The notes under the pieces are model-generated. The model saw only the letters and a program-made list of their open reading frames with translations, had not been told where the DNA came from and did no database searches. Positions 1 to 20,469 of a DNA stretch of 64,000 nt are shown here, in pieces (positions within the stretch are counted from its first letter, which is position 1; each line of letters starts with the position of its first letter). The position numbers and the translations under genes are program-made. The DNA is from Octopus sinensis. Its lineage: Eukaryota. The stretch is taken from positions 103,354,001 through 103,418,000 of the forward strand of contig NC_042997.1 in NCBI RefSeq assembly GCF_006345805.1, given 5' to 3'.

Positions 1-639
1 CATAACTGCATTTTTCTTCGCATTGGCATGTGATATCGTTGAACTTTTGAGAAATACCACAAGACTGTACGTTTCGACAACGAGGCTCACAGCGACAGGT
101 ATCATAATTAAATTTTTCATTTGCTCTGCAGGAAACTGCATAACCGCATTTTTCTTCGCATTGGCATGTGATATCGTTGAACTTTTGAGAAATACCACAA
201 GACTGTACGTTTCGACAACGAGGCTCACAACGACAGGTATCATAATTAACTCTTTCATTTGCGCTGCAGGAAACTGCATAACTGCATTTTTCTTCACATT
301 GGCATGTGATATCGTTGAACTTTTGAGAAATACCACAAGACTGTACGTTTCGACAACGAGCCTCACAACGACAGGTATCATAATTTATCTTTTCATCATT
401 ACGGCAATACAATGTTGGGCATTTGGAAACACATTGGCATGAAATCAAATCAAGAGTTTGCGAACCACTGCATGGCTGAGTAAAAGGACAAGCTTTTTGG
501 CATCGGCAACTTGTAGTATTCAGTCGTTCATCAGCACCGCAGTTTGGTGGATAAGCACATTTCGGCAAACACCGACAATTTTGATAATCAAGGGTTTCAG
601 AAATTTGGCATTTTGGTATGGGAAAGCAGCGTTGCGATG
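1..639 (-). CDS. Coding exon 5 (runs off the window) of a secreted chitin-binding protein: tandem Cys-rich C-x10-C-x-C-x3-C-x5 repeats (BR3/VEGF-C-tail-like)
   Basis: Minus-strand acceptor tttttaatttgtag|CA at 640/639. Stop-free frame: SQRCFPIPKCQISETLDYQNCRCLPKCAYPPNCGADERLNTTSCRCQKACPFTQPCSGSQTLDLISCQCVSKCPTLYCRNDEKINYDTCRCEARCRNVQSCGISQKFNDITCQCEEKCSYAVSC... A 138-bp DNA repeat unit starts at 1, 139 and 277. Phase 1 matches the upstream exon. Confidence 0.92.
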
Positions 640-744
640 CTACAAATTAAAAATATATAATACCATTATTTATAATAGACTCAAACTGTGACATTTTATT
701 TTTCTATAACAAAATTATACATATATTCGTTTCAATGTTTGACA

Positions 745-908
745 CTAGGCCAGCAATTTCGGTGCGGGTGTTAGTCTCAATCGGTACTTAATTTATTGAC
801 CGTAGAAAGGATGAATGACAAATTCGACCCCGTAACAATTTGAACTCAGAAAGTAAGACTGGACGAAATATCACTAAGCATGCTAACGATTCTGCTAGCT
901 CGCCATCT
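745..908 (-). mobile_element. tRNA-derived SINE, family A (degenerate)
   Basis: Reverse complement of the recurrent gagctggcagaatcgttagc...gagttcaaatt...tttcatcctttc motif seen more than 15 times in the window. Confidence 0.7.
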
Positions 909-1477
909 TATGCATACATTGAAATACATTTTGATACTGTGTCTGACTAAGTATCGGGCAAGTTTCATACTGGAAATGGTCCGGATTTCTGGATTTTACT
1001 TGTAGAGACAGTTGAAATATATACTTAAAATGTATGATAAACTATATAAAGTAAAGGACTAAACTGTATTCACAAGTCAAAATAATATACTTCTAAAGCA
1101 GGTTCTGCCTCATAATTATTAAACCACTTTAAAGTTTTTAAGTATATCATATTGCACCATGTATACGGTATAATGCTTATAGGATGAAAATTAATCGAAG
1201 ACAAATTTAATAGATACAGGTACAAATTAATACACTTCTAAAACAGAGTGTTTAATCTTTTTCTATCTACTTAAAATGTAAACAACAAAGCTATTTTTAA
1301 CAAACCGTATGCAAATTGACTAACAAAGCAGCTGCACGGCAAACTAGGGCTGGCGCGTGAAATTCAAAACTAGCTAATTTCAAAAATAGTCGGGTTTTGG
1401 TAATTCCGGATGTCTGGAAGCCGGATAAGAGGTCGATACTGTATTACATTTAATTTAGAGACCCAAAAATAACTTAC

Positions 1478-1675
1478 ATGGAGTAGTCATACCATAGGGT
1501 GTACATTCTCGGGAATCAAGGCAAGATCCTAACATCGAATGATAAGTTCCTGAAGCTTTCAGGTCTGCACAAGGTTGAATAGAAGTTGTTATTCCATAGC
1601 TGCAGACTCCCCACATTAAACATGATGTAGAATCTGTTTGATAGACGGCAGGATTTCCCAGTGATTTGCATTTAT
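1478..1675 (-). CDS. Coding exon 4: divergent chitin-binding type-2 (CBM14-like) domain
   Basis: Acceptor tcttttctttcag|AT (1676/1675) and donor CCAT|gtaagt (1478/1477). 198 nt, phase 1-1. Translation: DKCKSLGNPAVYQTDSTSCLMWGVCSYGITTSIQPCADLKASGTYHSMLGSCLDSRECTPYGMTTP. Cys spacing C-x15-C-x5-C-x10-C-x15-C-x5-C. Confidence 0.88.
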
Positions 1676-1744
1676 CTGAAAGAAAAGATACATTAAAATA
1701 TCAAGGATAACTTTGCATTTGTAAATATATACTCTTTTACTCTT

Positions 1745-2145
1745 TACTCTTTTACTTGTTTCAGTCATTTGACTGCGGCCACGCTGGAGCACCGCCTTTA
1801 ATCGAGCTACTCGACCCCGGGACTTATTCTTTTGCAAGCCCAGTACTTATTCTATCGGTCTCTTTTGCCGAACCGCTAAGTTACGGGAACATAAACATAC
1901 CAGCATCGGTTGTCAAGCAATGCTAGAGGGACAAACACAGACACACAAACACACACACGCATATATATATATATATATATACGACGGGCTTCTTTCAGTT
2001 TCCGTCTACCAAATCCACTCACAAGGCTTTGATCGGCCCGAGGCTATAGTAGAAGACACTTGCCCAAGGTGCCACACAGTGGAACTGAACCCGGAACCAT
2101 GTGGTTGGTAAACAAGCTACTTACCACACAGCCACTCCTGCACCT
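1745..2145 (-). mobile_element. tRNA-derived SINE, family B (full length)
   Basis: tRNA-like head (tggctgtgtggtaag...ggttcagttcc), internal microsatellite and ataaaagag tail; near-identical copy at 59105-59515. Confidence 0.85.
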
Positions 2146-17379: not shown

Positions 17380-17790
17380 AAGTGCTGTAGTTGCTTTTTG
17401 GGAAGAAGACTGCTTTCGAACCGCATGGTTTTGGGTTCAGTCCCACTGTGTAGACCTTTGAGCAAGTGCCTCAGGACGACCAAAGCCTTGTGAGTGGATA
17501 TGATGGATGGAAACTGAAAGAAGCCTATCGTATATGTGTGTGTATGTGCGCGTGTTTGTGAAGTGTGTGATTGAGTGTGTGTGTATCTCCCACAGCTGCT
17601 TGGCAACCTGTGTTGATGATGATCTGTTTACTTTTCCGTAACTGAGCGGTTCGGCAAAATAGACCAATGAAATAGACACCAGCGTTATAATATGTACTGG
17701 GGCCGATTGTTTCGACAAAACCCTTTAAGGCGGTGCTCAAGCATGGCCGTAGTCCTATGACTAGAACAAGTAACGGTAAGAAACGAAAAG
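17380..17790 (+). mobile_element. Family-B SINE
   Basis: gggttcagtcccactg...gccttgtgagtggat...ggaaactgaaagaagcc and the 3' ctcaagcatggccg segment. Confidence 0.75.
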
Positions 17791-18087
17791 GTAATATATG
17801 TAACGGGACTTCAACGCAGTATCCATCTACGAAATTCCACAATTACACTCACAATATATCGGTCAATTCGAAAACACAGTGGATACGTAAATTGTTGCTC
17901 AGTGAACTAAGATCCAGAATTATGATTGTGTTATGCAAACTTCTGAAACAAACGGCGATGCCAGCGTCTGATTGAACATTTGAAGTTGGTTTGGTAAATA
18001 AACAATAGGCTTCTGATTCATTAATTTGTAATGACAAGAAGCATACAAAAAATTCCCTAAAATATATATAACCATAATCATACTTAC

Positions 18088-18108
18088 CCGGTGGAAGGCC
18101 ATCTCCAA
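18088..18108 (-). CDS. Coding exon 2: 21-nt microexon (VGDGLPP)
   Basis: Minus strand reads atttttctaactgtttcag|TTGGAGATGGCCTTCCACCGG|gtaagtatg. Strong sites with a CTAAC branch-point-like motif; 21 nt, phase 1-1, keeps the frame between exon 1 and the CBM14 exon. Confidence 0.7.
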
Positions 18109-19321
18109 CTGAAACAGTTAGAAAAATTCGATTAATGACATTATCAAATGAGTTTCATTAATTTAATCATATTTTCTTGTAGAAATAAATTTAATGTATT
18201 CTGGCAATAGCGTTAAATTAATGGCGTAGTAATGTTTTTCAACATCCGGTGGGTAAAGATAATTTTGACGTCATCTCCACCTTTTTAACAGGCATGATGA
18301 GTAAGACAGCATTCCGCGTCCTTTCACACCAGCGCTCTGAGGCAACAGACCCCTTAGTTATCCCTTGTTACTCTTCTGTGTTAAACCTAAAAGTAATGTT
18401 TGAATATTTAATATACTGTATTACTTGTCGAAGATTTTTGTGAAGTATGATTGAATTGTGATGACTTTCAACAAAATATCGTTTTTGCCTACTAAGATAG
18501 CATTCGGGTTAGTTTGTGCTATAGTTGTATTTCTTGAGAGAAATTTGGGAATTCAAGCGAGAAATTGTTTTTAGGTTAAAAAATTCTTTATTATTCCTAT
18601 TGAGTTTGTTAAGTTTATTTTCTTTTGATATTCAAAGGACATTGAATTAATACAGGACTATTTTTCTTTTTTTAATTATTGGTTTCTGCGGAACGAATCG
18701 TACTCATGGCCTCCTTAGACCCTCCCAAACGGATGAGATTGATGCCGTTTAACTTTCAGAATAAACTTGTAAATCGGCAGTTGTAGCCAAGACGGGAGCA
18801 AAGTCAAATTTCCAATATTATGAAAACGAATTGTGTGGCAAGTAGGACAGAGAGGCGTGTATCATTCTTGTCATGCATCTGGACACACGAACACACACAC
18901 GCACACACACACACACACACACATCCACACACATATGCCAACAAAGACACATATGCTAATGCACAAGTACAAACACACGAACGCACATTAACGTTAATGG
19001 AAATGAACAGGAAAAATATATTCAACATCAGAAAAGAAAATAGGCAATTTCATTCCGTCAACCAGCTTAGTTCCTGCAGACTGGTTGTACACACACACAC
19101 ACACACACACACACACACATACACACACACACATAGATACATACACATATATATACTAAACATAGTACATACTTTTTACGGTAAAATATTTGTGTCACAG
19201 GATTTATAAAATATTTCTCATTTAATACTTTTTAAAGTTTATACAACAATTAAAATTTGAAAATTTGTTGCAACTTTCAAATTTTTCAAGCGAGTTTATT
19301 AATTGATAATTCCTTATTCAC

Positions 19322-19562
19322 CTGTTCTGTTTTGTACCTGATTTCCACCATTTCGTGTCTGATCTCCGCCATTTCGTGTTTGATCTCCGCCATTTCGGGT
19401 TTGGTCTCCACCATTTTGGGTTTGGTCGCCACCATTTTGTGTCTGATCTCCCCCATTATTCCACCATGGTGTTGTATTGGGTTGTGTTGGGAAGTAAAAT
19501 CTACCAGAAGCTTCCGAGAAGAAGTACAGAAGAAGGCCAAATGTTATGGCCCGCATTTTCAT
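19322..19562 (-). CDS. First coding exon: signal peptide plus six NGGDQT(Q/R) heptad repeats
   Basis: Translation: MKMRAITFGLLLYFFSEASG-RFYFPTQPNTTPWWN(NGGDQTQ)2(NGGDQTR)3NGGNQVQNRT, followed by donor ACAG|gtgaat (phase 1). Differences between repeats are mostly synonymous third positions in this frame. An acceptor (ttttcttatag) lies 12 nt upstream of the ATG at 19575/19574. Confidence 0.85.
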
Positions 19563-20469
19563 TTCTGCAATTATCTATAAGAAAATAATTAAGATCAACA
19601 ACCGATCAAACCATTGAAAAACTTCTCAACTGCTAAATATTTTATTATATTCTCAATATATTAAGTTATTCACACATTTGTCTTGTTTTCATATGGTTTC
19701 TTAAATAATTTATCTTCACATTTTAGATTAGAAGCAATTTAGAATTCTATACTCCATCAATTGCCAGCCAATTGTTGCAATGCATATACTCAGAATGCTT
19801 AATCTTACCTAGAAACTGTAGAGTTTCTCCAATTAAAAGAGTATGTTCTCATTATATAGATTTTGTTAGTATAAGTAACACCTATATTGTTGAAAACACT
19901 AGTCTAGATCACTAGATTTTTCGCACAAATAGCGATATTTTCCCTCATTCTATTTTCCACAGCAAAGAGTGATAGTCAAGGCTGGAAATTCTTTCACAAA
20001 ATATTTGCGTGGCTTTAGCTGTTTTTAGTTCTACTCAACAGCCCAATGCATTTCATATCTAATTAACTTTAATTAATTAATTTAATTAATTTATTAAGTA
20101 TCAAGTAGCCAGGTGCCTGTTTGCTAACAATTTAACTAACAGCGTGCCGTTAATTAAGCATCAGTGAGCTGGCAGAATCGTTAGTACGCAGGACAAGATG
20201 TTTAATGGTAATTCATCCGTCTTTACGTTCTGAGTTGAAATTCTGCCGAAGTTGACTTTGCTTTCATTATAATAAATAATAACTGTGATATCTACCTATA
20301 ATCTAATGACAATTAAGTAATTGTATAAAAGTAAATGTGTTTCAAATTGTCTAATGGTAAAAGTAGAACGTTCATATGATATAGTATAATCAGAAACTTA
20401 AAAATATATTCGTAACTTATTTTAAAACTAATAACGCTACACGTTCACCTCATATTCTTTTCTACTCTG

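Follow-up and report, generated by a model that had tools for sequence, protein, structure and literature searches.

Introduction

The Pif/BMSP proteins of molluscan shell matrices were defined in a 2024 survey by their VWA domain, and a BMSP with a single VWA was found in Octopus bimaculoides (PMC11291548). Divergent extra domains, termed CBM_14L, are typical of these proteins, and cysteine repeats are not mentioned in the survey (PMC11291548). A further group, the third to be described and named "Laminin G3/Pif-like", comprises proteins with a signal peptide, three ChtBD2 domains (2-3) and a LamG3 domain, but without VWA; its members occur across the cephalopods, including the shell-less octopus, and were found in the matrix of the Argonauta hians eggcase as well as in that of the Nautilus shell (bioRxiv 10.1101/2021.07.10.451900). 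Here we analyze a window of 64,000 nucleotides of Octopus sinensis (contig NC_042997.1, positions 103,354,001 to 103,418,000 of the forward strand; all coordinates below refer to this window unless stated otherwise). Positions 1-19574 hold the 5' two-thirds of a spliced gene for a predicted secreted extracellular-matrix protein that combines polar heptad repeats, a chitin-binding module and a long array of cysteine cassettes.

Motifs of the CXCXC type are present in the C-terminal propeptide of VEGF-C, and CXC and CXCXC motifs are also reported for ciliate metallothioneins. Cassettes of the BR3/sp185 type occur in midge silk, the barnacle cement protein cp20k, pearl-oyster byssus and the sea-star footprint protein sfp15 (PMC12817120), and CXCXC repeats are reported for the sericin-like moth silk glue SP150 (PMC11385562). 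Literature searches retrieved no account of the octopus protein or of its combination of modules, and no paper on such cassettes in molluscan chitin-binding proteins.

Results

Five exons on the minus strand join in one reading frame

An earlier note on this DNA, made from its letters alone, had proposed five minus-strand exons separated by four GT-AG introns of phase 1, with a product of at least 431 amino acids. This structure was reproduced in full. The five exons within 1-19574 rejoin in one frame, since every intron is in phase 1, and the resulting product of 431 amino acids remains open at the edge of the window. Exon 1 (19322-19562, minus strand, as are all exons and introns of the gene) starts with the ATG at 19562, which is the first methionine codon downstream of an in-frame stop, encodes a predicted signal peptide and a polar N-terminus with heptad repeats, and ends at the phase-1 donor ACAG/GTGAAT. 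It is followed by a micro-exon of 21 nt (exon 2, 18088-18108, phase 1-1), which contributes the peptide VGDGLPP. A CBM14/peritrophin-A domain is encoded by exon 3 (7280-7474, phase 1-1) and a six-cysteine module with CBM14-like spacing by exon 4 (1478-1675, phase 1-1). Exon 5 (1-639) encodes the cysteine cassettes; only its 5' part is present, and its frame is open where the window ends.

The introns measure 1213 bp (intron 1, 18109-19321), 10613 bp (intron 2, 7475-18087), 5604 bp (intron 3, 1676-7279) and 838 bp (intron 4, 640-1477). All four are GT-AG introns of phase 1; three of them start with GTAAGT, and the 3' ends show a polypyrimidine tract followed by AG. The list of open reading frames had been said to show the antisense shadow of the gene, and this holds for two plus-strand frames, 23-442 and 19257-19580, which are the shadows of exons 5 and 1, respectively. 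When the gene model and all fetched proteins were compared to positions 20001-64000 by tblastn, neither a paralogue nor a further exon was found.

Octopus orthologues support the gene model

The translation of exon 5 was searched against 1.84 billion representative proteins. The best match was P0001, an independent predicted model of 776 amino acids from O. bimaculoides (E 1.4e-177). The complete joined product of 431 amino acids aligned to P0001 colinearly over its full length with 90% identity (395/438), and the sole gap in this alignment was 7 amino acids, corresponding to one extra heptad copy in O. bimaculoides. P0001 crosses all four exon junctions without a gap (...NQIQNRT/VGDGLPP/NACDS..., ...VKCAH/DKCKT... 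and ...GITTP/PSRPC...), and the micro-exon peptide VGDGLPP is found at the equivalent place. A colinear fit of this kind is far beyond chance, and at the level of sequence it confirmed that the five-exon spliced gene is real. Two other donor sites were considered and rejected: CAG/GTACAA at 19338 in exon 1 would be in phase 0, while P0001 supports the phase-1 donor at 19322, and for exon 4 the donor at 1493 was discarded as P0001 supports the distal donor at 1478 (...TPHGITTP/PS...).

A longer predicted form, P0029, has 822 amino acids and one additional double unit of 46 amino acids. Both P0001 and P0029 are predicted models from EukProt without names, and their C-terminus is identical to that of the NCBI model P0027, which is encoded on O. 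bimaculoides chromosome CM046601.1. The corresponding locus of Octopus vulgaris (OX597814.1, L002) showed 98.3% identity to the window over 9 kb, which places the DNA in the O. vulgaris complex or very near to it. For the O. bimaculoides locus (L001) the nucleotide identity was 96.4% for exon 3, 97.5% for exon 4 and 87-92% for the introns. In both genomes the splice sites on either side of exons 3 and 4 are conserved, as is the acceptor of exon 5.

Compared to O. bimaculoides, the ratio of the proportions of nonsynonymous and synonymous differences (pN/pS) was about 0.33 for exon 3 and 0.46 for exon 4, and the overall ratio of the substitution rates (dN/dS) was about 0.56. On these alignments exons 3 and 4 are under purifying selection. 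The older part of exon 5, which encodes the cysteine array, gave a ratio of 0.77, so that the constraint on the array appears to be weak apart from its cysteines, every one of which is retained.

The orthologue also reveals what lies beyond the edge of the window. Further cassettes follow, and then a C-terminal domain on separate downstream exons. In the earlier note the possibility of a LamG domain had been raised for this part, and the C-terminus of the orthologue is indeed Laminin_G_3-like, of the concanavalin-A-like kind (PF13385, 23.2 bits, E 8.6e-5), with a score below the cut-off of 27.6; P0027 scored 21.1 bits against the same cut-off. In O. vulgaris the LamG exons further downstream are open, and their protein is 95-96% identical to that of O. 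bimaculoides. Another homologue search, performed with the joined protein, the CBM14 pair and the LamG alignment, gave no match, although the collection includes identical or near-identical sequences; we do not take this negative as evidence that homologues are lacking.

Modules of the predicted protein

The predicted signal peptide (MKMRAITFGLLLYFFSEASG, 19503-19562, minus strand) consists of MKMR, the hydrophobic stretch AITFGLLLYFF with a mean Kyte-Doolittle hydropathy of 2.15, and SEASG, which by this heuristic correspond to the n, h and c regions. Cleavage would presumably take place after A-S-G, in agreement with the -3/-1 rule. The sequence that follows at the N-terminus is polar, with many Asn, Gly and Gln residues. 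Six copies of NGGDQTx had been counted in it; the heptad array (19332-19457, minus strand) holds five exact copies of NGGDQT[QR], and the sixth is the variant NGGNQVQ. Signal peptide, heptads and VGDGLPP together occupy residues 1-87 completely, and residues 1-87 of P0001 align with exon 1. A scan of the joined protein against Pfam revealed no VWA domain and no PDGF/VEGF domain.

The peptide encoded by exon 3 was recognized as CBM_14 (PF01607) with 39.0 bits (E 8.7e-10, cut-off 22.1), as had been predicted, and with 32.9 bits when the joined protein was scanned. Its cysteines are spaced C-x17-C-x5-C-x14-C-x12-C-x7-C. The six cysteines of exon 4 show a peritrophin-A-like spacing (C-x15-C-x5-C-x10-C-x15-C-x5-C), and a tandem of two PF01607 domains had been expected. 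For the second module this expectation was not borne out by any of the direct approaches. No Pfam match was obtained even at E 10, the matches of the module alone in phmmer and BLASTP were not significant, profile-profile comparison by hhalign gave a probability of 0.2 with shallow profiles, and a Foldseek search of the PDB with a single-sequence AlphaFold model (predicted local distance difference test, pLDDT, 59) found nothing. We also aligned the octopus pair with the CBM14 pair of a protein from the gastropod Babylonia areolata. The two pairs align colinearly with all 12 cysteines matched, with an E value of 9e-5 among the fetched proteins and of 6e-7 against two gastropod segments alone, and the second domain of the Babylonia pair scored 24.8 bits, above the Pfam cut-off. 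Exon 4 thus probably encodes a very divergent second CBM14.

Exon 5 encodes nine strict units of C-x10-C-x-C-x3-C in a register of 23 amino acids (C-x10-C-x-C-x3-C-x5), which are cassettes of the CXCXC or Balbiani-ring-3 type, and 37 of the 213 residues encoded by this exon are cysteines. The assignment to CXCXC-type repeats made earlier was supported by Pfam (PF03128, 30.3 bits, cut-off 15, five matched stretches), with the qualification that the literal motif of the octopus cassette is C-x-C-x3-C and not C-x-C-x-C. Within exon 5, a tandem array with a period of 138 bp (1-396, minus strand) comprises 2.9 copies of a two-unit repeat of 46 amino acids at 95% identity and runs past the edge of the window. 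We interpret this array as recently amplified. At least nine cassettes are counted in the window and about 13-15 in the two models from O. bimaculoides; in O. vulgaris the 138-bp repeat has more copies. The AlphaFold model of exon 5 (pLDDT 36.6) was too poor to use. When PDB sequences were searched with exon 5 and with a profile of the LamG-like domain, no more than chance matches, or none at all, were obtained.

Gastropod relatives share the modules in another arrangement

The best match to the cysteine array outside the octopuses was XP_076452270.1 of Babylonia areolata (P0002, 1521 amino acids; E 2.8e-22), with 52% identity in the best stretch and the common motif ...N-x-D-T-C-R-C-E-P-R-C. 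The protein KAL8620138.1 of Nucella lapillus was likewise matched by the search with the array. XP_076452270.1 and the two Nucella proteins KAL8620138.1 and KAL8584787.1 are unnamed or listed as "hypothetical" in the databases. Besides these, there were matches restricted to the cassettes, among them one to a protein of a foraminiferan, one to an ADAMTS of a sea cucumber and others to environmental eukaryote proteins without names.

The gastropod proteins are built in the order VWA-VWA, cysteine cassette array, CBM14 pair and LamG-like C-terminus, followed in Nucella by heptads. CXCXC repeats were called by Pfam in the Nucella proteins. The C-terminus of the octopus protein matched Nucella residues 1081-1275 by BLASTP with an E value of 9e-13; the alignment covers 199 residues, and landmark positions are conserved in it. 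The affinity to Pif suggested earlier holds, and this C-terminus is homologous to that of gastropod proteins with VWA, CXCXC and CBM14. The C-terminal heptads of Nucella, NGG[SWF][NT]T[QRK], were located at residues 1289-1351 of P0018 and residues 1337-1371 of P0030 and agree with the octopus heptad NGGDQT[QR] at 5 of 7 positions. The likeness of the heptads may go back to shared ancestry, or a low-complexity repeat may have arisen convergently.

All modules of the octopus protein thus appear to recur in gastropod BMSP-like proteins, reordered and together with VWA. Two propositions of the earlier note are weakened on this basis. The combination of domains, which had not been recognized, is not peculiar to octopus, as the gastropod proteins contain the same modules. 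The polar repeat had been thought to replace the VWA domain; the Nucella relative carries VWA and NGGxxT[QR] heptads together, so that the modules would have been permuted rather than swapped.

The repeat array coincides with breaks in assemblies and gene models

In O. bimaculoides a gap of 403 N (CM046601.1, L001 9464-9868) interrupts the array of the cysteine-repeat exon, and the NCBI model P0027 (421 amino acids) begins at an internal methionine downstream of this gap. The array of O. vulgaris includes a unit (L002 9527-9665) of 139 bp instead of 138, which results in a +1 frameshift; a scrambled stretch follows at L002 9800-10200, and there are further frame changes in the array. After the +1 frameshift the frame of exon 5 reaches a stop at L002 9605, which is the exact end of an annotated upstream model of 564 amino acids. 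This model therefore includes the same exon. A second O. vulgaris model, CAI9715631.1 (P0028, 392 amino acids, "hypothetical"), begins just downstream of the first. The public models are thus truncated or split because of the N-gap or the frameshift in the 138-bp array.

When the whole proteins P0001 (776 amino acids) and P0029 (822 amino acids) were compared to Pfam by hmmscan, no family was reported. Scanned singly, the orthologue's CBM14 and LamG-like pieces did score, as did the cysteine-repeat exon of the window, and the loss in the whole-protein scan may be due to the composition filters of HMMER acting on cysteine-rich repeats. Automatic annotation is easily misled by this behaviour. 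The gene had been called hidden, and this applies to the truncated or split NCBI models and to the blank whole-protein scan; it does not apply to the models of 776 and 822 amino acids, which are public in EukProt. The gene is already annotated, but in truncated or two-part form.

Other features of the window

The window is AT-rich and dense in microsatellites and transposon remains, and its GC fraction is as low as 0.26-0.27 between 12 and 14 kb and between 40 and 42 kb. Microsatellites of the types (CA)n, (TA)n/(TATG)n, (ACA)n and others were found at 11169-11324, 11816-12373, 13420-13641 and 18804-19209, with many more in 20000-56000, and most of the long spurious open reading frames are due to these dense repeats. 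Intron 2 is rich in microsatellites and in dispersed repeats resembling short interspersed nuclear elements (SINEs). Such SINE-like repeats of about 150-200 bp lie in the introns at 14357-14565, 10813-10995, 8055-8489 and 783-910, and each of them matches a dozen or more sites in the 30-kb loci of O. bimaculoides and O. vulgaris with 70-86% identity.

A Tc1-type transposase frame of 339 amino acids is uninterrupted at 50781-51800 (minus strand; HTH_Tnp_Tc3_2 62.8 bits, DDE_3 56.7 bits), and the element may have been active recently. At 57000-57530 (minus strand) a fragment of a mariner-type transposase was identified (Transposase_1, 84.9 bits). Visual inspection of the plus-strand frame 15117-15443 within intron 2 suggests the C-terminal portion of a mariner transposase, but the frame gave no Pfam match.

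Discussion

The domain content of the gene and its orthologue points to a protein without VWA and with rearranged modules that is probably related to the Pif/BMSP family of molluscan shell matrices. Among the groups described so far, the cephalopod "Laminin G3/Pif-like" proteins would be closest. We infer a chitin-anchored, disulfide-rich structural matrix protein. It would be secreted by a chitin-depositing epithelium, and its CBM14 module or modules would fasten it to chitin fibrils. An extended, disulfide-stabilized spacer could be formed by the cysteine cassettes, which may also cross-link chains; disulfides are more likely than free thiols, because the signal peptide implies an oxidizing secretory route. 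The length of this spacer would evolve fast by gain or loss of the 138-bp double unit, while the LamG-like end and the acidic/polar heptads might touch mineral or further components of the matrix. Candidate tissues are the beak, the radula, the stylets and the cuticle of sucker or gut.

Several points weigh against this reading. The second CBM14 is recognizable by its cysteine spacing only and is unproven. The single-sequence AlphaFold models of exons 4 and 5 are poor (pLDDT 59 and 37). All members scanned for Laminin_G_3 stayed under the gathering score (23.2, 21.1 and 19.4 bits versus 27.6), and the domain lies outside the window. The cysteine array shows the high substitution ratio of 0.77, and its frameshifts in O. 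vulgaris may be assembly errors or real decay. Membership of the cephalopod Laminin G3/Pif-like clade is suggested by the domain scheme, and no protein of squid, cuttlefish or Nautilus was among the named matches of the search of representative proteins, most matches being without name or taxon.

A role as a secreted adhesive or cement, for example of the sucker, the egg-stalk or another glue, instead of a matrix protein inside a chitinous hard part has also to be considered; the cassettes would then give cohesion, and CBM14 would do no more than tether the protein to a chitinous surface. The BR3/sp185-like cassettes reported for cp20k, byssus and sfp15 (PMC12817120), the CXCXC repeats reported for SP150 (PMC11385562) and the polar, Asn/Gly/Gln-rich N-terminus would be in keeping with such a role. 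The nearest relatives with the same modules are, however, of the Pif/BMSP type, whose known members belong to the matrices of shells and eggcases, and we regard an adhesive function as unlikely.

A decaying or non-functional locus in the O. vulgaris lineage, with the damage lying beyond position 1 in the array, appears quite improbable. The 139-bp unit, the further frame changes, the split of the annotation into models of 564 and 392 amino acids, and the dN/dS of 0.77 in the array part are what decay would produce. All five exons in the window are nevertheless open with intact splice sites, purifying selection acts on exons 3 and 4, and the open LamG exons of O. vulgaris have kept their high protein identity to O. 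bimaculoides. Near-identical units of 138 bp are moreover prone to assembly error, and O. bimaculoides has its N-gap at the same spot.

The possibility that the exons belong to two or more transcripts, such as a short CBM14 protein and a protein with cysteine repeats and LamG, is very remote in our view. P0027 and P0028 do begin inside the array, and O. vulgaris has two adjacent models, but these truncations coincide with the assembly gap or the frameshift, and the supposed start codons are internal methionines or out-of-frame sequence in the array. All introns are in phase 1, and the models of 776 and 822 amino acids span everything. We give hardly any credence to the array as a metallothionein-like metal binder or a VEGF-C-like growth-factor tail, for which the CXC and CXCXC motifs of VEGF-C and of ciliate metallothioneins could be quoted, as the signal peptide leads to an oxidizing route in which cysteines are normally disulfide-bonded, no PDGF/VEGF domain was matched in Pfam by the joined protein of the window and the residues before the array are taken by other modules, and the regular unit of 23 amino acids with four cysteines, together with its chitin-binding and LamG partners, indicates matrix proteins.

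Returning to a VWA-less matrix protein related to Pif/BMSP, a more speculative idea may be added, which we consider possible but rather doubtful. The CXCXC array and the NGGxxT[QR] heptads could be old, undescribed building blocks of conchiferan Pif/BMSP proteins that were shuffled at phase-1 borders. Octopus would have kept a version without VWA, whose rod length changes quickly by way of the 138-bp unit and perhaps tunes the mechanics of beak, stylet, radula or cuticle. Shuffling of modules fits with the phase-1 symmetry of exons 2-4.

For cephalopod and biomineralization research, the Pif/BMSP/LamG3-Pif-like family gains a differently built member, and a gene of a shell-less octopus is tied to gastropod BMSP-like proteins by three to four common modules. 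Domain surveys miss the gene: they take VWA as the starting point, the whole-protein hmmscan is blank, and two chromosome-level assemblies are each defective at the exon with the tandem repeat. The locus is in need of manual curation. No long-standing question is opened or settled by the gene, whose function is inferred.

Comparison with known systems

The arthropod peritrophins and cuticular CPAP proteins, with their tandem CBM14, share with the octopus protein a CBM14 that has the six cysteines of peritrophin-A; they are secreted into a chitinous matrix, as is predicted for octopus. They differ in that most are built from arrays of CBM14 and mucin and have neither LamG nor CXCXC cassettes, and no specific similarity to them was found. 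The Balbiani ring 3 protein (sp185) of Chironomus and the tail of VEGF-C have in common with it the repeated C-x10-C-x-C cassettes, the score with PF03128 and secretion, which is predicted for octopus. In contrast to both, the octopus unit is strictly 23 amino acids long with a fourth cysteine, is not accompanied by a PDGF/VEGF domain, and is combined with chitin-binding and LamG partners, so that the likeness extends to the repeat only.

The Pif/BMSP proteins of bivalves (Pinctada Pif97/80, Mytilus BMSP) resemble the octopus protein in having CBM14 and a LamG-type or low-complexity C-terminus (PMC11291548). Measured against the family in the strict sense, the octopus gene has CBM14 and, as seen through the orthologue, a LamG-type C-terminus, but lacks the defining N-terminal VWA; no array of cysteine cassettes is described for Pif/BMSP (PMC11291548). 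Members of the Laminin G3/Pif-like group come closer. Like the octopus protein, which is predicted to be secreted, they are secreted, have no VWA, carry CBM14/ChtBD2 domains N-terminally and a C-terminus of the Laminin_G_3 type, which in the octopus orthologue is a likeness scoring below the cut-off, and are present in octopods. The described members run with three consecutive ChtBD2 domains straight into LamG3, whereas the octopus gene has one clear and one doubtful CBM14, the NGGDQT[QR] heptads and about 9-15 or more CXCXC cassettes before LamG.

The gastropod BMSP-like proteins share the CXCXC-type array, the CBM14 pair and the homologous LamG-like C-terminus, and Nucella also has the NGGxxT[QR] heptads. 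Their two N-terminal VWA domains are absent from the octopus protein, and the order of modules, which is heptads, CBM14 pair, cysteine array and LamG in octopus, differs from theirs, where the cysteine array stands before CBM14. What was already known are unnamed full-length models of the orthologue and gastropod relatives with the same modules; the new element is that a known family occurs here in a variant build.

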